Positions 870-51,340 of a DNA stretch of 64,000 bases are shown here, in pieces (the first letter of the stretch is position 1; each line of letters opens with the position of its first letter). The translations under genes were made by a program, and so were the position numbers. The notes below the pieces were generated by a model that saw nothing but the letters and a program-made list of their open reading frames with translations, did no database searches and had not been told where the DNA came from. The stretch is from the sequence record MW248466.1; one strand, 5' to 3'.

Positions 870-3071
870 ATGCCAAAAGAAATAGACTTAAATTCAGAAA
901 AATTTAAAGATTATTCATATAATGAATTAAACTCAAGAGGTTCACAATTAAAAGATGGTAATTTAGATTTAGAATTTGAATTAGCTTCAACTAACAAATA
1001 CTTTTTAGATAAAGTAAACAAAAATGTAAGATACTTCAAAACATATAAAGAAAAAATTAATTATTTAGTTGATAATGATTATATTGATGGAGATATGATC
1101 AATAATTATGATTTTGAATTTATTAAAGGATTAATGAAAGAATTAATGGCTTATAAACATAGATTCACTCGTTTATTAGGAGCTAAAAAATTCTATGAGC
1201 AATATGCAATGAAAGATGATGCAGGAGAAATCTTATTAGAACTATATGAAGATAGAATTTTATTTGTAGCTTTATATTTAGCTGATGGTGATGAAGAATT
1301 AGCTAGAAATATTGCTAATGAAATTATTACAGGTACATTCCAACCTGCTACGCCAACATTCCTTAATGCAGGTAGAGTACGTTCTGGGGAATTAGTAAGT
1401 TGTTTCTTATTAACTATGGAAGATTCTTTATCATCTATTTATAGAAATATCTCTAATGTAGCTCAATTGAGTAAACGTGGTGGAGGAATTGGAGTATCTT
1501 TAAGTAATCTACGTGCTGACAATGATCCAATTAAAGGTGTTGAAGGAGCAGCTTCAGGAGTAGTTCCAGTTATGAAAGTATTTGAAGACACATTATCATA
1601 TGTAAATCAATTGGGTCAACGTAATGGTGCAGGTGCACTTTACTTAAACATTTTCCATAAAGATGTAGTAAAATTCTTAGATACTAAGAAAGAAAATGCT
1701 GATGAGAAAGTAAGATTAAAAACTATTTCATTAGGTTTAACAGTTCCAGATAAATATTATCAATTAGTTAAAGAAAATAAATCATTATATACATTTAGTC
1801 CATATGATATTAAAAAATATTACGATTTAGATTTCGATAGTATTGACTTTAATACTTACTATGATATCTTTGTAGATGATAAACGTATCGGTAAAGAGAA
1901 AATGTATGCTCGTGATTTAGAAACTACTATTAGTAAATTACAACAAGAATCTGGTTATCCTTATATCATTAATATTGATACTGCTAATAGAGCTAATCCA
2001 ATTAGTCATGGTAAAATTAAAATGAGTAACTTATGTAGTGAAATTTTACAAGTACAATACCCTTCATTAGTTGACGATAATCAACAATACGTTAAAACAG
2101 GAACAGACGTTTCATGTAACTTAGCTTCAACTATTGTACCTGGTTTAATGAAATCAGAAGACTTTGGTAAATCAGTTGGAACTATGTTAAGAAGTTTAAA
2201 TTCAGTAGCAGAAAAATCTAATATTGAAGCTGTGCCTACAGTTAAGAAAGCTAATGATCTATTCCATACAGTTGGTTTAGGTGCAATGGGATTACACACT
2301 TATTTAGCTGAAAATCATATTCAATATGGATCAGAAGAATCTAAAGACTTTACTAATATTTATTTCATGTTATTAAACTATTGGACATTGGTTGAATCAA
2401 ATAAAATTGCTAAAGAAAAAGATGAGTCATTCTATTTATTTGATAAAACTGAATATGCTGATGGTTCTTACTTTGATAAACGTTACATTGGTAAAAATAT
2501 TCAACCACGTACTGAAAAAGTTAAAGAATTATTTGAAGATATCTTTATTCCATCTGATAGTGATTGGGAACAATTAAGAAATAATATCGTTATGGATGGT
2601 TTATACAATCAAAATAGATTAGCTGTAGCACCTAATGGTTCTATTGGTTATGTTAGAGAAGTATCACCTTCAATTCACCCTATTGTTGAATTAATTGAAG
2701 AACGTGTAGAAGGTAAAACAGGTACTACTTTCTATCCAGCACCAGGTATTACACCAGACAACTTCGAATACTTTAAGAAAAATGCATATCAATTGGATAT
2801 GAGAGATATGATTGATTTATATTCAGAAGCTCAATATCATGTAGATCAAGGTATTTCTATGAATATTTATTTAATGAATGAACTTGATCCAGATCTTTAT
2901 GAATGGAAAAAAGATTCTCTAGATAAAGAAACAACTACACGAGATATCAGTAGATTACGTAACTATGCTTATAGCAAAGGTATTAAATCTATGTATTATA
3001 CTCGTATTTATTCACCAGACCATGATGAAAACTCTCAAGGTATTGTTGAATGTGAATCATGTTCAATTTAA
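870..3071 (+). CDS. nrdE: ribonucleotide reductase class Ib alpha subunit
   Basis: FQPATPTFLNAGR, VSCFLL, SNLCSEILQ (radical Cys), AVAPNGS, C-terminal CESCSI. Confidence 0.95.
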   Translation: MPKEIDLNSEKFKDYSYNELNSRGSQLKDGNLDLEFELASTNKYFLDKVNKNVRYFKTYKEKINYLVDNDYIDGDMINNYDFEFIKGLMKELMAYKHRFTRLLGAKKFYEQYAMKDDAGEILLELYEDRILFVALYLADGDEELARNIANEIITGTFQPATPTFLNAGRVRSGELVSCFLLTMEDSLSSIYRNISNVAQLSKRGGGIGVSLSNLRADNDPIKGVEGAASGVVPVMKVFEDTLSYVNQLGQRNGAGALYLNIFHKDVVKFLDTKKENADEKVRLKTISLGLTVPDKYYQLVKENKSLYTFSPYDIKKYYDLDFDSIDFNTYYDIFVDDKRIGKEKMYARDLETTISKLQQESGYPYIINIDTANRANPISHGKIKMSNLCSEILQVQYPSLVDDNQQYVKTGTDVSCNLASTIVPGLMKSEDFGKSVGTMLRSLNSVAEKSNIEAVPTVKKANDLFHTVGLGAMGLHTYLAENHIQYGSEESKDFTNIYFMLLNYWTLVESNKIAKEKDESFYLFDKTEYADGSYFDKRYIGKNIQPRTEKVKELFEDIFIPSDSDWEQLRNNIVMDGLYNQNRLAVAPNGSIGYVREVSPSIHPIVELIEERVEGKTGTTFYPAPGITPDNFEYFKKNAYQLDMRDMIDLYSEAQYHVDQGISMNIYLMNELDPDLYEWKKDSLDKETTTRDISRLRNYAYSKGIKSMYYTRIYSPDHDENSQGIVECESCSI

Positions 3072-3087
3072 ACAGGGGGTATTTAAT

Positions 3088-3306
3088 ATGACATTAAAAG
3101 AAAAATTTGAAAGTAAATATAGAAATTTAAATAAAGAACCAGAAATTTTAATTGTAGTTATAAGTTTACCTAGTGGAGCTAAGGAAGTAATTTCCAATAG
3201 CTCCGATCTAGATAATAAAGTACATTATTATCTGGAAACATATGATAAATTTTTTAGACATAATAGAGATCATAATGTCAAAATAATTGATTTTATATTA
3301 GTATAG
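3088..3306 (+). CDS. small hypothetical protein (72 aa) between nrdE and nrdF
   Basis: Likely true start is ATG 3088 after RBS-like AGGGGGT; the track's longer 2965 start overlaps nrdE. Confidence 0.65.
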   Translation: MTLKEKFESKYRNLNKEPEILIVVISLPSGAKEVISNSSDLDNKVHYYLETYDKFFRHNRDHNVKIIDFILV

Positions 3307-3327
3307 AGAATAAGGAGAGTTAATTAG

Positions 3328-4395
3328 ATGACAGTAAAAGGAAGTTTTTTAACAAGTAATAAAGATGGGAACTATATTCCAATGAACTGGAATAATGTCG
3401 ATGATTATGTAGATATCATGACATTTGATACATTGGTATCACAATTCTGGACTTCAACACGTATCCCTGTTTCAAATGATATTAAAGCTTGGAATGGTTT
3501 AGACGATAATACAAGAGATGTAGTTAATAAAGTATTTTCAGAATTAACTATTCTTGATACACTTCAATCACGTGAAGGTGCAGATGCTTTAGTACATCAT
3601 GCTCTTACACCTATGGAAGAAGATGTTTTAAATAATATTAGATTTATGGAAACAATTCATGCTAGATCTTATTCTACTATCTTTACTACATTATGTAGTT
3701 CTAAACAAGTTGACGAGAATTTTAAATGGGCTAGAGAAAATAAATATGTACAAAAAAAGATTAAATTAATCAATGATGCATATCAATCTGATGATATTAT
3801 GAAAGTGCAAGCTGCTTCAGTATTCTTAGAATCATTCTTATTCTATTCAGGTTTCTATACTCCATTAAGATTAAAAGACAGTCTTAAATCAGTACTTGAA
3901 ATTATAAAACTTATTCTTAGAGATGAGTCAATGCATGGTACTTATATTGGATATAAATTTGGAAAACGTTTTGAAAGATTAGAAGAAAATGAACAACAAG
4001 AAATTAAAATGTGGGTTACTTCTTTATTATTTGAATTATATCAAGTAGAATGCGAATTTATTGAAGAAGTATACACTGAAATTGGATGGGCTGAAGATGT
4101 TAAAATCTTTGCTCAATATAACGCAAATAAAGCTTTATCAAATCTTAAATTAGATCCTATTTTTGAGACTACTGAAGAAGATGTAAATCCTATTGTAATG
4201 GCAGGACTGAAAACTTCTACAGGAAACCATGATTTCTTCTCTCAAGAAGGTAATGGTTATTTAATTGGTAAAGCAGAAAATACTAGAGAAGAAGATTATG
4301 ATTCAATTGATGTTAATGAACTTAATAAGAATATCATTGATTCATATAAAGATAAAGCAGACGATAGATTTAGTCATAGTTATTATATAGATTAA
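3328..4395 (+). CDS. nrdF: ribonucleotide reductase class Ib beta subunit
   Basis: FMETIHARSY, LESFLFYSGFY, RDESMHG di-metal ligands; NHDFFSQEGNGY C-terminal motif. Confidence 0.95.
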   Translation: MTVKGSFLTSNKDGNYIPMNWNNVDDYVDIMTFDTLVSQFWTSTRIPVSNDIKAWNGLDDNTRDVVNKVFSELTILDTLQSREGADALVHHALTPMEEDVLNNIRFMETIHARSYSTIFTTLCSSKQVDENFKWARENKYVQKKIKLINDAYQSDDIMKVQAASVFLESFLFYSGFYTPLRLKDSLKSVLEIIKLILRDESMHGTYIGYKFGKRFERLEENEQQEIKMWVTSLLFELYQVECEFIEEVYTEIGWAEDVKIFAQYNANKALSNLKLDPIFETTEEDVNPIVMAGLKTSTGNHDFFSQEGNGYLIGKAENTREEDYDSIDVNELNKNIIDSYKDKADDRFSHSYYID

Positions 4396-12046: not shown

Positions 12047-13498
12047 TTATGATAATAAACTTCCAATAGGACTGTTAGGATGAGGGTTTGCTTTAGACTT
12101 ATAACCATAAATAGTATCATCTATTTGTTGTTTAAATACTCTTCCTTTTAATACTTGCATACTTCTTGAATATTGATTTTGCATATTAATTTGAGCTTTA
12201 TCTATAATTGATAGTTGATCTCTTCTAATACCTGCTAAACAATCAATGTAAGAGATTAAACCTGTATTAAATTTCATACGTTGGAATGATTTTGATGCCA
12301 TTAAGTTAGGATACATATCTCTTATATTTAGTGATATTGTTATTTCTCTAGGAAAACCATCAGCTGTCCATGTACCTTCTTCTCCACGAACTATATTCAT
12401 TGAAGTTATAATCCCTGTATGACATTCAAATCTGCCAGGACAATTTGCTCTAACAATGAATGGTTGTTTATATGAGAAAATAGAATCTTGTAAAGGTAAA
12501 GCTAATACTAATAATGACATGAATGGTAGATATACATTTTCAAAGATAGATTGAGGATCTCCATACGCACTGTAGAATTTAAATTCTAAATTATAAGTAC
12601 GATCAAAAGTTGAGTTCATCCAAACATCAGGGTAATACATTGATGCACCATCTAAATTTTCCATAAAGTTACCAACTATACCACCTAATACTGGCATACT
12701 TGAAACCATGTCATTAATACTATCTTTAATAGATCTTGTAATTTTACCTAAAATAGAAGCTCCTCCAATACGAGCCATTTCTTTTTCTTCACGTATTTCT
12801 TGGTTTTTATTATTAATTTGAGAAGCTATATCAGATTGATTATACTCATGCATTGCTGATTCAGATACACTAGTTGCCTTATCTGCATAATAAGCTAAAC
12901 CGTAGTTTTTATCATCTAAAGATCCACCCAGATCAAATGATCCTTTTAGTCCCATAGATGCGTGTAGTTGACTTCCCATAGTTTGTACATATTTATAGTA
13001 CTCACTCATTTTAGGTTCAAAACTAACCATACGTCCATCTTTAGTATTACCTATACCGACTAAACCAGCTGTAGTGTTTGCTAATTTATCTAAACCTTCT
13101 CCAAAACTCCATAGTTTACCTTCTCCCGGTTTACCAAATAGTTTACCATTTAGTTTAGGCATACCTGGCATTATAAATACTAAAGGTAAATCCAATTCAA
13201 ATGTTCTTTTATATATTCTTCTATTAGGATCATCTAAACTAGAATAATACATTGGCATTCCAAATACATCTAGTTCACCTTTAACATTTCTTAATTGAGT
13301 TTTATCAGAAGCTCCATATTCAGAAATATCACGAGTATTACCTGTGGCATCTTTAAATACACCTAAATCATTTTGACTAGGATCATATTCTTGAAAATCA
13401 TAATCGCCTTTAGTTTCATCGGGTTTAGGTATTAAAGCCATATCATCGTCACTAATATCTAATGGTTTCGTATCATTTTTTTCTTTTTCCTCTGCCAA
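12047..13498 (-). CDS. baseplate/tail-tube initiator-like protein (T4 gp48/54-like)
   Basis: FDRTYNLEFKF...LALP...PFIVR...IITSMNIVRG...DGFPREITISLNIRD pattern; TTG start. Confidence 0.5.
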   Translation of the reverse strand: MAEEKEKNDTKPLDISDDDMALIPKPDETKGDYDFQEYDPSQNDLGVFKDATGNTRDISEYGASDKTQLRNVKGELDVFGMPMYYSSLDDPNRRIYKRTFELDLPLVFIMPGMPKLNGKLFGKPGEGKLWSFGEGLDKLANTTAGLVGIGNTKDGRMVSFEPKMSEYYKYVQTMGSQLHASMGLKGSFDLGGSLDDKNYGLAYYADKATSVSESAMHEYNQSDIASQINNKNQEIREEKEMARIGGASILGKITRSIKDSINDMVSSMPVLGGIVGNFMENLDGASMYYPDVWMNSTFDRTYNLEFKFYSAYGDPQSIFENVYLPFMSLLVLALPLQDSIFSYKQPFIVRANCPGRFECHTGIITSMNIVRGEEGTWTADGFPREITISLNIRDMYPNLMASKSFQRMKFNTGLISYIDCLAGIRRDQLSIIDKAQINMQNQYSRSMQVLKGRVFKQQIDDTIYGYKSKANPHPNSPIGSLLS

Positions 13499-44294: not shown

Positions 44295-44480
44295 ATTATC
44301 AAGTTAATGCTCCGTTGTATAGTGATATACAGAAAGACAAATTTATTAATTGCTGGGATAATTCATTAATTAAATCAGCATCTTAAGAAATTAAGTTCAA
44401 CGACTAAATATAAATATACTTAATATAAAGTATAAGATATAGTCTAATCTTTATTAAATTAATAAAGACTAATAAAAATG
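44295..44480 (+). ncRNA. ORF-less group I intron (186 nt) in DNA polymerase
   Basis: P1 GAGU|AUUA/UAAUGCUC with U44294-G44309 wobble; AAUUGCUGGG (P4), AAUCAGCA, GUUCAACGACUA (P7), AAGAUAUAGUC; ends in G44480; splicing restores MKNEFLLDKQLTTDKKKTYA. Confidence 0.9.
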
Positions 44481-45904: not shown

Positions 45905-47227
45905 ATGGAGTATATTAACACTATGGCAAAACAATCAGATGTAAAAGGACAAAATGAAAATTTGTACCGAAAAAATGGCAGAAAAATACCGGCAAAACAA
46001 AGGAAAATGGATGATAATGGTACATGGTTTTACAGATTTGACCAAAATAGATTTATAATTGATAATATTATGAGATTCAATGAAGATAAAGAATTAGTGA
46101 AGCTATTAAAAGAATATAGAAAAAATAATAAAGATTACTTTAATAACAATGCTTATTTCTTTAAATTTAATAGAGATGTAACTATTTTTAATGATTATCA
46201 AATTTCAATATTTTTAAGTGATATTATTAAAGAACATGTTGGAAAAGACTTCTTAAAAGATATTACTTTAAGTGATAATTCTAAATTAATGATAAAAGAT
46301 ACAGGTGATATGGAAGTATGGGCAAGAGAACCTGAAACTAAAAATTTGTATGATCCACATAAACTTGATTTGGATTTATATAAAATAATATCATATGTGG
46401 ACTATGAAAGAGATTTAATTATTATTAATATGATTGAAAATGAAAGTCCTAAGATGTTTAGCTTAGTTATTAAATCTTTAGATCGTATTGATGAAGAAGA
46501 TATTAGATATAATGAAGAAGAGAAAGAAATTCAAATCAAATTCACAAAGTCTAATTTAAGAAAAGTATTGACTAGATGTAATAGTAAAACTTTTAAGACT
46601 ATTTTACCTTTTACGTATAATTATGAAGGGTTTGACGAAGAACATTCTATCGTATTAGATAAATTTAGTAAAACATATATTAAACAGATTGAAAAAGAAG
46701 AATATGATACAAGACAAAAAATTGGTGGTCAACCATATCATTTAAGACCTGAAAATAGACCTTATTTTGCTAAACGTAGAAAAATAAAAGATTGGGAAGT
46801 ACTTGAAGTATTTGATGAAAATAAAGACGGTTATAAATTGTTTAGTGTTAAAGATAAATCCAGTGGAGTTATTTATTTAGTTTATTATACTGGTAAGGAT
46901 TATCATGGTAAAGGTATTTTAAAACAAGGTAAGGATGTGCCAAGATTACAAGATCCTTCCAATTATAGAAAAGCAGTAAAAATAAAAGATATTTATTATT
47001 CTGTATTAATGACACAAGCAAAATATAATTTAATGAAGAAGAATAAATTTGATTTGTATACATCATTTGATTCATCAAAATTAAAATACTTAACTGTGGT
47101 TGATGAAGATAATAATGACTCAACAGATTTTCTAGATAATTCTACAGTATTTAAAATAAGACAGATTACTTTTGATGAAAATAAATTAGAACCATTAAAA
47201 GATAAATTTATCAAGGATTATGAATAA
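45905..47227 (+). CDS. hypothetical protein (440 aa)
   Basis: Long ORF; no motif recognised. Confidence 0.7.
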   Translation: MEYINTMAKQSDVKGQNENLYRKNGRKIPAKQRKMDDNGTWFYRFDQNRFIIDNIMRFNEDKELVKLLKEYRKNNKDYFNNNAYFFKFNRDVTIFNDYQISIFLSDIIKEHVGKDFLKDITLSDNSKLMIKDTGDMEVWAREPETKNLYDPHKLDLDLYKIISYVDYERDLIIINMIENESPKMFSLVIKSLDRIDEEDIRYNEEEKEIQIKFTKSNLRKVLTRCNSKTFKTILPFTYNYEGFDEEHSIVLDKFSKTYIKQIEKEEYDTRQKIGGQPYHLRPENRPYFAKRRKIKDWEVLEVFDENKDGYKLFSVKDKSSGVIYLVYYTGKDYHGKGILKQGKDVPRLQDPSNYRKAVKIKDIYYSVLMTQAKYNLMKKNKFDLYTSFDSSKLKYLTVVDEDNNDSTDFLDNSTVFKIRQITFDENKLEPLKDKFIKDYE

Positions 47228-48054: not shown

Positions 48055-49216
48055 ATGAAAATAGATATGATCAACGTTGATCAAATTATTACAGCTTATG
48101 AAGCTAAAGAAGTTACAAACCCTATTTTCTTTGATTCAGGAACTTTACCTAAAGAAGACGGTTTATTCTCATATGAAATATTTGGTTTAATAGGTACTGA
48201 TGAAAGAAAGAATAATGTAGGTTGGATTAATCTAGGCGGTAAATACCTAAATCCTGTAGCTTATAAATCTATGAAAGAATTAGATAAAAATGTCGATTTA
48301 TGTATTCAGGGATCTGATTACTTTAAAATTGAAAAAGGGCAATTAGTTCCAGATGAAAATGGAGAAACTGGGTTAAATTTCTTATACGATAATTATGAAA
48401 ATCTTAAATTTAGAAAAAATGATTCTCGTATCCGAAATGAAAAAATTGATATGCTTAAAAATACTCCTAAAGATAGAATATTTACAGATAAATGGCCTGT
48501 AATACCTGCTTTCTATCGTGACTTTAACCCTAATGAAACTTCAGGAGAAATTCAGGATACTGAAGAAATAAATGATATGTATGCAAGTATCTTAAGATCT
48601 GTAGATTCAATTAGTTTTAATTCATTTGAATTTGTAGCTAATACGACTAAATATAATATTCAAAATAAATTATTTGAAATATATGTTAAATTAACTTCAG
48701 GTGAACTATCAGGTAAAACTGGTATGATGCAAAGAAATATTTTAGGTAAAACAGTAGATAATAGTACTCGTTCAGTTATTTCTTCACCTAAAATTAATTC
48801 AAATAAATGGAATGAAATGCAAATTGAATTCGGTCAATTAGGTGTTCCGTTAACTCAATTAATAACATTATTCTTACCTTTCTTTAGCAAATATATTATA
48901 GACTTTATTGAAATTCATAAAGATGCTTTCCAAACTGCTACTGGAACTGATGAAAAAGAATTATCGCTAGAAGAAGTATATGAACAATTTGATGATAAAT
49001 CTATTAAGAATATGTTAGAATTCTTTATTAAAGATCCTAATGAAAGATTTAGTCCTATATATGTAAATGACAGACAAGGTAAACGTCATAAAGTTAAATT
49101 ATTTGAAAATACTTTAGGCAGAACTTTTACTGTAATTGATTTACTTTATATAGCTGCTACAGAGATATGTGAAGATAAGCATGTAGTTTATTCGAGGTAC
49201 CCGATTGAAAATTTCC
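48055..49216 (+). CDS. rpoC: RNA polymerase beta' N-terminal subunit, exon 1
   Basis: DGLFSYEIFG, GWINL, PVIPAFYR, GKTGMMQRNILGKTVDNSTRSVIS, RYP; four exons join to 503 aa. Confidence 0.9.
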
Positions 49217-50692
49217 GTGCGAAGTGTTTCCCTATAAGTGCTTAAAGCATGAAATGGGATAGTTTTTATTTTATATAAAAATGAAACTTTAATAGAGATG
49301 ACTGGTAACGGTCACATAGACACCTACATGCATTGTGAGTAATTACTTTGTATGAAGCTAGGTAATATGGGTCATATATGGTGACGAATAGGAACTTCTT
49401 ATGATGTCCTTTAAAATGAAGAGAGTAGTTTGGAATGGTGAAATCTTCTTTAAGTGTTTTAAAGGGTAGAGGGAGCACCTAAGTATGATATACTATCTAT
49501 TAAGGAACGCTTGAGATCCAATAATTGTTTTAATATTGGAAGTCAGCAGACCATAGTAGCGTTGAAGCTTTGTAATAAAAGTGGAGCGAAGGGTCATAGT
49601 CAATAAAAGAAAACTTTTTTAATAGAAAACTTTTTTAATGAACAATAAGCTATTAAGATATAAAGGAATGATAGCTTATGAATATTAAAAAAATGAATCA
49701 AGATCAAAAAAATGAATGGTTTCAAAATAAATTAGATGAAAAATATGATTCTGATAATAGATTATTATTATTAAGTGATTATAAAACTACTCATGAAAAA
49801 GTTAAAATAAAGTGTTTAAAATGTGGTCATGAAGATATTAGGAGACCTGCAGTCTTAATTCAAGGAAATAGATGTTCTAGTTGTGGAAATAGAAAAAGAT
49901 ATACAACTAAAACACTACAAGAAAGATTTGATGAAGTTTATCCTAATGAATATGAAATTTTAGAAGAATATAATGGTCATATAAGAGATAAAATGAGAAT
50001 AAAACATATTCCTTGTGGGGAAATTCTTCATAAATCTCCCAATTCTATTTTAAATACTGGAAGAAAATGTCTAAAATGTTCTAAACTCAAAAAGAAATCT
50101 ATACAGGAAACACAAAATTTAATTGATAGTAAATTTAAGGAAAGAGAATTTACAATTGTTTCTGAAGAATATATTAATAAAGATACTCCATTAAATATTA
50201 AACATGAAAAATGTGGAAATATAATAAATATTTCATATACAAATATACGAAATGATGTTTTTTATTGTAAATATTGTAATAGAAGTAATGGAGAACTATT
50301 GGTAGCTAATATATTAGATGAGTTAGGCATTGATTATGAGATAGAATATAATCACGAAAAAGTTAAAAGTTTAAAAAATAGATATATGCCTTTTGATTTC
50401 TTCTTTAAAATTAATGGTAAAGAATGTGCAATTGAGTATGATGGAAGACAACATTTTGAAAAAGATTACATTGGTTTTAAAGATGAAAAATCATTTGAAG
50501 AAAGAGTCAAAAAAGATTTACTTAAAAATAAACTTTGTGAAGAAAATAATATTAATCTATTGAGAATCCGTTTTGATCAAAATAAAACTATTAGAAAAGA
50601 TATTTTTGAATTTATTGATGGAACGCTGTATGCGATGAAAGTCGCACGTACAGTGTGAAGCGGGGGAAAATCGTAAGATTACCTATCGCTAT
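49217..50692 (+). mobile_element. group II intron (1476 nt, no RT) in RNAP beta' gene
   Basis: 5' GUGCGA at 49217; 34-nt domain V ACGCUGUAUGCGAU-GAAA-GUCGCACGUACAGUGU (50623-50656); domain VI with bulged A50685; 3' ...AU; removal restores RYPIENFLNVAPAKIKILT. Confidence 0.9.
49678..50658 (+). CDS. intron-encoded putative homing endonuclease (Zn-ribbon repeats + Vsr-like/EDxHD-type nuclease)
   Basis: Three repeated CxxCG/HxxCG...CxxC units; C-terminal GE..VANIL...PFDFF...AIEYDGRQHF...DLLKN...NINLLRI; RBS AAAGGA. Confidence 0.8.
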   Translation: MNIKKMNQDQKNEWFQNKLDEKYDSDNRLLLLSDYKTTHEKVKIKCLKCGHEDIRRPAVLIQGNRCSSCGNRKRYTTKTLQERFDEVYPNEYEILEEYNGHIRDKMRIKHIPCGEILHKSPNSILNTGRKCLKCSKLKKKSIQETQNLIDSKFKEREFTIVSEEYINKDTPLNIKHEKCGNIINISYTNIRNDVFYCKYCNRSNGELLVANILDELGIDYEIEYNHEKVKSLKNRYMPFDFFFKINGKECAIEYDGRQHFEKDYIGFKDEKSFEERVKKDLLKNKLCEENNINLLRIRFDQNKTIRKDIFEFIDGTLYAMKVARTV

Positions 50693-50883
50693 TAAATGTC
50701 GCACCTGCTAAAATTAAAATACTAACTACCGTTGATACAATTCCAGAAATTACTTTAGATGATATTGTACTTAAAGATTATCCTAAAGTTGTTCATGAAT
50801 ATCCTGTTGATGAAGATGTATTTATAGATACTGCCATTATACACAATTCATATGCTGGAGCACTCGGTGCAGATTTTGACGGT
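50693..50883 (+). CDS. rpoC: RNAP beta' exon 2
   Basis: LNVAPAKIKILT...HNSYAGALGADFDG. Confidence 0.9.
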
Positions 50884-51041
50884 AAGTTATATTGCCGTAT
50901 TTAAATATTATTAATTGCTGGGAGAGATTATCATCTTAATCAGCATCACTACAAATAGTGTTCAACGACTAAATATAATATGCTTATTTAAAGTAAAGAT
51001 ATAGTCTGATCTATATTATCTTAATATAGATAACATAAATG
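50884..51041 (+). ncRNA. ORF-less group I intron (158 nt) inside the catalytic DFDG|D motif
   Basis: P1 ACGGU|AA/UUGCCGU with U-G wobble; AAUUGCUGGG, AAUCAGCA, UUCAACGACUA, AAGAUAUAGUC; terminal G51041. Confidence 0.9.
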
Positions 51042-51167
51042 GATATGATCTCTATAAGATCTCTTTGGACAGTAGAGGCTAATAAAGAAGCTAATAAACT
51101 TCTTAATAAGAAAACCAACTATCTAAACTACACTGGTAATTCAGTACGTAATTTGGGTAATGAGAGT
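51042..51167 (+). CDS. rpoC: RNAP beta' exon 3
   Basis: DMISIRSLWTVEANKEA...GNSVRNLGNES completes GADFDGDM. Confidence 0.9.
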
Positions 51168-51307
51168 AACATGCTTGTATGCTCTCAATAAATAATATTA
51201 ATTGCTGGAAAAATCTAATTAGATCAATCAGCATCAACTTCATATAAGTTGTTCAACGACTAAATATATTACTAAGAAGATATAGTCTAATTATCATAAA
51301 TAATATG
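51168..51307 (+). ncRNA. ORF-less group I intron (140 nt)
   Basis: P1 UGAGAGU|A/UGCUCUCA with U-G wobble; AAUUGCUGG, AAUCAGCA, UUCAACGACUA, AAGAUAUAGUC; P9 AUUAU/AUAAU; terminal G51307. Confidence 0.85.
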
Positions 51308-51340
51308 GTACAAGCTTTATACTCTTTAACTAAAGAATAA
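51308..51340 (+). CDS. rpoC: RNAP beta' exon 4
   Basis: VQALYSLTKE*; spliced GNESVQALYSLT resembles bacterial SQDVVLGLYYMT. Confidence 0.8.
   Translation, partial: VQALYSLTKE

Follow-up and report, generated by a model that had tools for sequence, protein, structure and literature searches.

The locus and its host gene

The window analysed here is a stretch of 64,000 nucleotides of record MW248466.1, from the 267-kb AR9-like Staphylococcus jumbo phage MarsHill; record positions are obtained by adding 62000 to window positions, and the 3.3-kb region around the host gene matches the record with 100% identity. The ORF starting at 48055 is MarsHill gp113, the gene for the N-terminal portion of the beta' subunit of the virion RNA polymerase (RNAP). 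GenBank labels it 'viral RNA polymerase beta-prime subunit' and describes its CDS as a three-piece join ending at window position 51191, with the comment 'exon junction predicted based on alignment to YP_009283049', the AR9 protein. A Pfam search of the MarsHill exon pieces returned nothing useful. Its identification as beta' comes from phage S6, where the homologous gene is uninterrupted: in the region with NADFDGD, the S6 protein gave matches to the N-terminal beta' subunit of AR9 (7S00/7S01) and to bacterial beta' chains. The organization of the gene is as follows.

48055-49216, plus strand: exon 1, amino acids 1-387 and the first base of codon 388; colinear with nt 1-1161/2 of the S6 CDS; part of the GenBank CDS join.
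49217-50692, plus strand: group II intron (GUGCG...AU) with an endonuclease ORF at 49678-50658; RF00029 match of 57.1 bits, domains V/VI; absent from S6.
50693-50883, plus strand: exon 2, ending ...GALGADFDG; from comparison with S6 protein and DNA.
50884-51041, plus strand: 158-nt group I-type intron without ORF and without P2; empty site in S6; RF00028 39.2 bits; our own mini-intron model R1 124.9 bits; MFE z -3.5.
51042-51167, plus strand: exon 3, DMISIR...NLGNES, source of the third Asp of DFDGD; from comparison with S6.
51168-51307, plus strand: second miniature group I-type intron, 140 nt, without P8 hairpin, unannotated; empty site in S6 and Madawaska; RF00028 32.6 bits.
51308-51340, plus strand: exon 4, VQALYSLTKE and stop; residues identical in S6 and Madawaska.

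Between MarsHill and S6, 72 bases of the coding sequence differ; of the changed codons, 56 are synonymous and 8 non-synonymous, indicating that the gene is under purifying selection and functional and is no decayed copy. The preliminary description had raised the possibility of an intact DFDGD paralog that would make this copy a pseudogene; given the purifying selection, this objection fails. Across all six frames of the whole window there is a single DFDG. Two further introns of the gene, of group II before the 158-nt insert and of 140 nt after it, had escaped that description.

Boundaries of the 158-nt insert

The exon codons GGT GCA GAT TTT GAC GGT (GADFDG) end at 50883 and GAT ATG ATC TCT ATA AGA (DMISIR) begin at 51042, leaving an insert of 158 nt that is preceded by U (50883) and has G (51041) as its last base. 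In the unspliced frame the insert reads AAG TTA TAT TGC CGT ATT TAA, i.e. KLYCRI*. The letters thus bear out the earlier observation that DFDG is parted from the third catalytic Asp and that read-through would give DFDGKLYCRI*, so that an unspliced message can yield nothing but a truncated product.

Excision of 49217-50692, 50884-51041 and 51168-51307 leaves 1512 nt encoding 503 amino acids. This product aligns without gaps to the S6 protein, also of 503 amino acids, and the residues are identical at all three junctions; the peptide spanning the DFDG|D junction would be ...ALGADFDGDMISIR... In the DNA alignment, the S6 gene falls into four blocks that break exactly at the MarsHill exon coordinates, the bases on either side of the DFDG|D junction are the same in the two phages, and S6 carries the exact empty site GATTTTGACGGT|GATATGATC. 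With PALS_2, DC4 and SA1, four phages have this empty-site allele, showing at the DNA level that precise excision would restore the host reading frame. Judged from these alignments, the 158-nt insert is a precise insertion, far beyond chance.

On the sense strand the insert has no ORF beyond seven codons, and hence no intron-encoded homing endonuclease. Group II features are absent from it as well: it starts with AAGUU and has no RF00029 match.

Group I anatomy of the insert

The elements recognized in and next to the insert are listed below.

50879-50883, plus strand: 5' exon strand of P1, ACGGU, in which U50883 is the cleavage-site U; pairs with GCCGU at 50894-50898.
50886-50898, plus strand: internal guide sequence, consisting of the P10 strand GUUAUAUU (50886-50893) followed by the P1 strand GCCGU (50894-50898); from exon pairing.
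50902-50904, plus strand: stop codon in the frame of exon 2, the seventh codon of the intron, between P1 and P3; read from the sequence.
50905-50911, plus strand: P3 5' strand AUAUUAU, partner at 50975-50981; covariation, 15 copies.
50916-50945, plus strand: P4 (50916-21 / 50940-45) around P5 (50924-28 / 50933-37); RNAalifold, pair counts, MFE fold and segment folds.
50947-50960, plus strand: P6 hairpin CACUA/UAGUG; MFE fold, with other complementary sequences in sibling copies.
50961-50974, plus strand: J6/7, P7 5' strand and J7/3 (UUCAACGACUAAAU), the conserved R element; RF00028 consensus, invariant in 15 copies.
50975-50981, plus strand: P3 3' strand AUAAUAU; covariation, 15 copies.
50981-50995, plus strand: P8 hairpin UGCUU/AAGUA; covariation and MFE fold.
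50996-51006, plus strand: J8/7 (AAGAUA) and P7 3' strand UAGUC, the conserved S element; RF00028 consensus AAGAUAUAGUC and RNAalifold.
51009-51031, plus strand: P9 hairpin, 10 bp; MFE fold and segment folds.
51041, plus strand: terminal G (omega G), 3' splice site; G-terminal in 16 of 16 curated family members.

The guide can pair with both exons, forming a P1 of 5 bp (ACGGU, 50879-83, with GCCGU, 50894-98) with the wobble U50883.G50894 at the splice site, and a P10 of 8 bp between GUUAUAUU and the 3' exon sequence GAUAUGAU (51042-51049). P7 corresponds to GACUA/UAGUC in the RNAalifold structure. The R element matches the RF00028 consensus at nearly every position, and the core blocks AAUUGCxGG, AAUCAGCA, GUUCAAxGACUAAA and AAGAUAUAGUC are identical to it. 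The thermodynamic MFE fold of 50876-51047 returned P1, P4, P5, P6, P7, P8 and P9, with z = -3.5. On this anatomy, the insert at 50884-51041 displays every structural hallmark of a group I intron, and together with the S6 empty site it upholds the first assignment of a group I-type intron of exactly 158 nt.

It is presumably spliced, and autocatalytically so. The intron has few helices, and these are short and rich in AU (23% GC, with P5 and P8 alone each contributing about -2 kcal/mol in segment folds), which makes unaided self-splicing uncertain; a protein helper may be needed.

Covariation among related copies

Fifteen copies from MarsHill, LY01, Machias, PB50 and AH12 were aligned on a structure comprising P3, P4, P7 and P8. 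In these copies 99.7% of the paired cells could pair, against 85% when shuffled and 19–49% when the partner strand was slid. Both partners had changed in 5 of the 6 pairs counted for the long-range helix P3 and in 4 of the 5 of P8. P4 (6 bp) had one compensatory pair and one change from wobble to Watson-Crick pairing. The short hairpins P5 and P6 have complementary sequences that differ from copy to copy. P7 is always pairable yet invariant, and thus has no covariation support of its own. The 158-nt intron has the pseudoknotted P3/P7 core, with P8 nested between P3' and P7'.

P1 and P10 were found in all 16 curated family members, and the guide follows the exon. Machias, PB50 and AH12 have GAUGGC in the exon and ACCAUCA in the guide of the orthologous introns, giving the pairing UGAUGGC/ACCAUCA where MarsHill has ACGGU/GCCGU; the C-G pair at position -4 has become U-A and the U.G at -1 has become C.A. 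Such a C(-1).A pair has been documented as a variant that occurs in nature (PMC11915505).

Detection by Rfam and annotation

The gathering cut-off of Rfam model RF00028 (Intron_gpI) is 50 bits. The 158-nt intron was aligned globally (model positions 1-253) with 39.2 bits and an E-value of 1.3e-8 in a search of 471 nt, falling short of 50 because P2 and most of P5, P6 and P8 are deleted. The missed cut-off is a score convention and not a structural feature. Rfam group I searches of the whole window at default settings and a 12-kb scan by E-value gave no group I match; the sub-threshold global alignment surfaced only in a scan of under 500 nt. At the gathering threshold, zero group I introns were likewise reported in loci L003 and L149-L152, though about 15 are present, two of them large, and across six phages none of the roughly 17 introns of the beta'-N gene was reported at the curated threshold. 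As a consequence, several GenBank records list gene fragments as separate proteins: those of LY01, PB50 and AH12 annotate the pieces as separate CDSs, in LY01 as hypothetical proteins. For MarsHill, GenBank already joins the CDS across the 158-nt intron, but omits the intron at 51168-51307. We infer from the three-piece join ending at 51191, whose internal coordinates are not shown, that the 158-nt intron had already been recognised.

The R...S core motif GTTCAACGACTAAA...GATATAGTC was present in at least 120 IMG/VR loci and, where tested, sits within threshold-passing RF00028 matches in other viral contigs.

Other introns of the gene and of the family

The intron at 49217-50692 has the GUGYG 5' end, domain V/VI and AY 3' end of group II introns; its domains D1-D4 gave sub-threshold Rfam matches. 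In place of a reverse transcriptase, its ORF at 49678-50658 encodes a 326-aa zinc-finger/DUF2726-like endonuclease. AR9 and PBS1 have a group II intron at the same codon, and the MarsHill group II intron is already listed for MW248466 (PMC12350094 supplement). Three public runs classed as 'RNA?', with 5–6% of the words, yielded contigs that match the 5' portion of this intron at about 96% identity, together with a few diverged exon scraps; the contigs cover window positions 49238-49629 and lack most of the flanking exons. They point to a close relative of this intron that resides elsewhere, in another genome or sample. The three runs, which hold only this relative's fragment, contained no joints over the beta'-N gene and speak neither for nor against splicing there.

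The 140-nt intron (51168-51307) has a P1 of 7 bp and a P10 of 8 bp and splits ...NLGNES|VQALYSLTKE. The GenBank CDS ends inside it, at 51191, which gives a C-terminus ...NESNMLVCSQ, not the conserved ...NESVQALYSLTKE; with the intron removed, the spliced product would end in ...NLGNESVQALYSLTKE. Co-conversion at this site, considered from the codons AAC GAA TCG in S6 and AAT GAG AGT in MarsHill, was dropped because the intron-less Madawaska carries the MarsHill codons.

A third member of 186 nt (44295-44480) lies in the DNA polymerase gene at an E|FLLDK junction and has a P2-like hairpin. The site is empty in S6, the difference in length from S6 confirms the 3' end at 44480, and GenBank gives this gene as a two-piece join. 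The window therefore holds three copies of the same core, two in the beta'-N gene (158 and 140 nt) and one in the DNA polymerase gene (186 nt). A weak R1 match at 13206-13294 on the minus strand (18.6 bits, E 0.72) is probably due to chance. The product gp111 (45923-47227, 434 aa) has no Pfam match and is flanked by homologs of two genes that are adjacent in S6, which makes it an insertion or deletion difference.

Copies of the family were found by blastn at 9–33 places per relative's genome. In LY01, the beta'-N gene (positions 2952-4314 of locus L149) has six introns, four of them miniature, and a 9-nt exon, TTTGACGGT (FDG, 3883-3891), lies between two mini-introns, so that DFDGD is assembled from three exons. 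Two LY01 introns, at 2952-3124 (I384) and 3702-3882 (D447), have the common guide GUCG and a near-identical 5' part, and their target sites have only CCGAU in common. A shared guide at targets so little alike suggests guide-directed, reverse-splicing-like transposition rather than endonuclease homing. By the U/G rule, splice sites could not be fixed for the large LY01 intron and the AH12 'LG' intron.

With model R1, the same compact architecture was also found clustered in IMG/VR contigs of uncultivated jumbo phages (200–400 kb). Dense clusters occur in loci L109, L044, L034, L063, L027 and L012, with at least 9 matches within 8 kb in L109, and the P8-less form was seen in L044 (2378-2509). 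Matches of about 100 nt were rejected as still smaller introns; they are partial alignments of larger introns.

The DFDG|D site in relatives

The following states were found at the DFDG|D site.

Empty: S6, PALS_2, DC4, SA1.
157–158-nt intron, mutually 97% identical (flanking exons 93–95%): MarsHill, LY01.
149–150-nt intron without P8: Machias, PB50, AH12.
Intron of about 1.47 kb with a DUF4379-type endonuclease ORF and the guide as in MarsHill: Madawaska.

By eye from the printed sequences, the LY01 and MarsHill introns show five differences, all in loops or junctions. In Machias, PB50 and AH12 (L150, L151 and L152, respectively), the DFDG|D introns, at about 3037-3186, lack P8 and have C(-1).A at the splice site; their core is 83% identical to the MarsHill 140-nt intron versus 75% to the 158-nt one. 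The introns of the same phages at the NES site (about 3313-3454) keep P8, and the P5 hairpin is absent. Because some members do without P8 and others without P5, either stem seems dispensable in the mini-intron family.

As far as these genomes can tell, the DFDG|D site is evolutionarily labile, and the DNA of the catalytic motif is a recurrent landing site for introns. The preliminary description had called the intron effectively undeletable, which does not agree with a site that is empty in four close relatives and otherwise occupied in Machias, PB50, AH12 and Madawaska.

Interpretation

We read 50884-51041 as a group I intron of the late beta'-N gene, stripped down and without an ORF, tolerated as a selfish element and not acting as a regulator, with a probability of about 0.85. 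This reading builds on the demonstrated boundaries, empty-site allele, covariation-supported group I secondary structure and exon-tracking complementarity of the guide. In the pre-mRNA, the guide at 50886-50898 would pair with the last five exon bases to form P1, with U.G at U50883, and again with the first eight bases of the next exon to form P10, the P3-P9 core folding around the guanosine site in P7. An external guanosine would then cut after U50883, and the terminal G51041 would dock in turn, leading to exon ligation and restoring GADFDG-DMISIR. Ribosomes entering unspliced RNA would halt at 50902, ahead of the core. The anatomy of the gene likewise lends support to the earlier proposal that the RNAP needs excision of the intron.

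Homing elements are usually recognised by their position in a conserved motif. The intron probably sits in the catalytic motif because the DNA of this motif is highly conserved, and would thus offer a durable target both for homing endonucleases, which the Madawaska and AR9 introns carry, and for guide-directed insertion; being selfish, it would be tolerated because it splices. Splicing itself, autocatalysis and arrival by homing or by guide-directed insertion are thus what the anatomy and the distribution of the intron would predict.

A broader claim, which we put forward only tentatively, is that the mini-intron family comprises the smallest complete natural group I ribozymes (140–186 nt, no P2, some without P8 or P5), multiplying endonuclease-free by guide-directed, reverse-splicing-like insertion to about 30 copies per genome, with up to six introns in the LY01 gene.

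Somewhat less probable still, and the most serious of the alternatives, is a group I-derived intron that has the same junctions and has lost its autonomy, the whole mini-family being served by a phage or host protein (maturase or chaperone). The MarsHill intron is indeed short of core-stabilising periphery, with no P2 and minimal P5, P6 and P8, its AU-rich helices are marginally stable, sibling copies are entirely devoid of P8 or P5, and the 9–33 places per relative's genome would make a shared cofactor worthwhile. On the other side, the catalytic-core sequences are all intact and invariant, no candidate splicing cofactor was identified, and engineered sunY mini-ribozymes of similar size stay active.

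The preliminary description had suggested that the intron could be a regulatory switch; splicing controlled by timing or temperature would then gate the active virion RNAP. Temperature-limited splicing is conceivable, since the ribozyme helices are weak and these phages plaque poorly at 37 °C (Korn et al.), and RNAP activity would have to depend on excision. However, the site is labile among very close relatives, four having no intron and others different ones, so that a conserved regulatory role cannot be ascribed to the intron; neither a ligand-binding element nor one for an alternative structure was seen, and the same intron family occurs in unrelated genes such as that of the DNA polymerase. 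We regard a switch as improbable.

Least credible of all is an unspliced gene, either a pseudogene, against which purifying selection speaks, or a fragmented one whose pieces are translated separately and assemble non-covalently: the intron does end in AUG (51039-51041), giving M-DMISIR..., which ORF finders call as 51039-51191, such fragments are annotated as separate CDSs in LY01, PB50 and AH12, and these phages in any case encode beta' in several separate genes (Korn et al.), but no Shine-Dalgarno-like sequence was seen by eye upstream of 51039, the catalytic triad would be on two chains, the 9-nt exon of LY01 between two such introns cannot be translated alone, and the conserved, covarying group I core with guides complementary to both exons would be left unexplained.

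Novelty and significance

An intron splitting the RNAP catalytic motif is not new, as that of AR9 lies one codon away and the MarsHill CDS is already joined. Introns beside the catalytic aspartates of jumbo-phage RNAP (PMC11620839) and abundant group I introns of roughly 200 nt in jumbo phages (PMC12880540) are also known. Nothing decisive was found in the literature on the smallest group I intron or on P8-less introns. What is new here is the group I typing and structure of the 158-nt intron, its unannotated 140-nt sibling at 51168-51307, the finding that the Rfam threshold misses all introns of the beta'-N gene in five relatives, and the picture of a family with 9–33 blastn places per genome and members without P8 or P5.

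For the phage, these results would mean that a packaged essential enzyme requires the removal of three different putative self-splicing elements from one message. For annotation, they mean that the MarsHill GenBank record gives a wrong C-terminus. AU-rich introns of 140–158 nt are natural counterparts of the engineered mini-ribozymes and, if active, candidates for the smallest self-splicing group I introns. Should the mini-introns self-splice unaided, the minimal natural group I catalyst would be redefined; should they not, a general splicing cofactor must come from the phages themselves or be borrowed.

Comparison with known systems

The Azoarcus tRNA-Ile intron and the engineered sunY mini-ribozymes are minimal group I catalysts, consisting roughly of P1 and P3-P9. 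The Azoarcus intron has 205 nt and keeps P2 and GC-rich helices, and the sunY mini-ribozymes are laboratory deletions. The MarsHill intron, a putative catalyst, is by contrast natural, about 50 nt shorter than that of Azoarcus, and has 23% GC.

Compact group I introns with a mean length of about 206 nt, around 18 per genome, have been described in the gut 'Jug' jumbo phages, where 37 of 76 predicted introns in three genomes were backed by metatranscriptome reads (PMC12880540). As in the MarsHill clade, many short ORF-less group I introns break essential genes of these phages (PMC12880540). The MarsHill-clade copies differ in being shorter (140–186 nt), in scoring under the Rfam cut-off and in residing in phages of a Gram-positive host.

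In phage PhiPA3, the gp210 intron, a putative group I intron, lies in an RNAP beta-subunit gene (PMC11620839). Like the MarsHill intron, it breaks a jumbo-phage RNAP gene right after conserved aspartates of the catalytic region, though the subunit is another one. It codes for an HNH endonuclease and has been shown to act in competition between phages (PMC11620839). The MarsHill intron has no ORF.

Korn et al. reported intron-disrupted RNAP genes in the MarsHill group of phages from protein alignment, without typing or structures, and found the Madawaska genome to be 92.4% identical to that of MarsHill. The Madawaska intron has the same DFDG|D junctions and the same guide, UAUAUUGCCGU, as the MarsHill intron. 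It differs by an ORF of 378 aa with a DUF4379 treble-clef domain, where the MarsHill intron has none, and by a much larger core that is otherwise unrelated in sequence and lacks the P9 hairpin seen in MarsHill.

A close parallel is AR9 gp144 (YP_009283049, virion RNAP beta'-N). This homologous gene has, like that of MarsHill, a group II intron after amino acid 387 and an annotated group I intron inside the catalytic DxDGD motif, which in AR9 carries the homing endonuclease gp145. The core motifs of the two group I introns are the same (CUGCUGG...AAUCAGCA...GUUCAACGACUA...GAAGAUAUAGUC). The AR9 intron is placed one codon upstream, at DYD|GD compared with DFDG|D in MarsHill, and is about 1.9 kb long as against 158 nt, the endonuclease ORF separating its guide from the 5' splice site, and with P5, P6 and P8 that are full-sized and more GC-rich than those of MarsHill.
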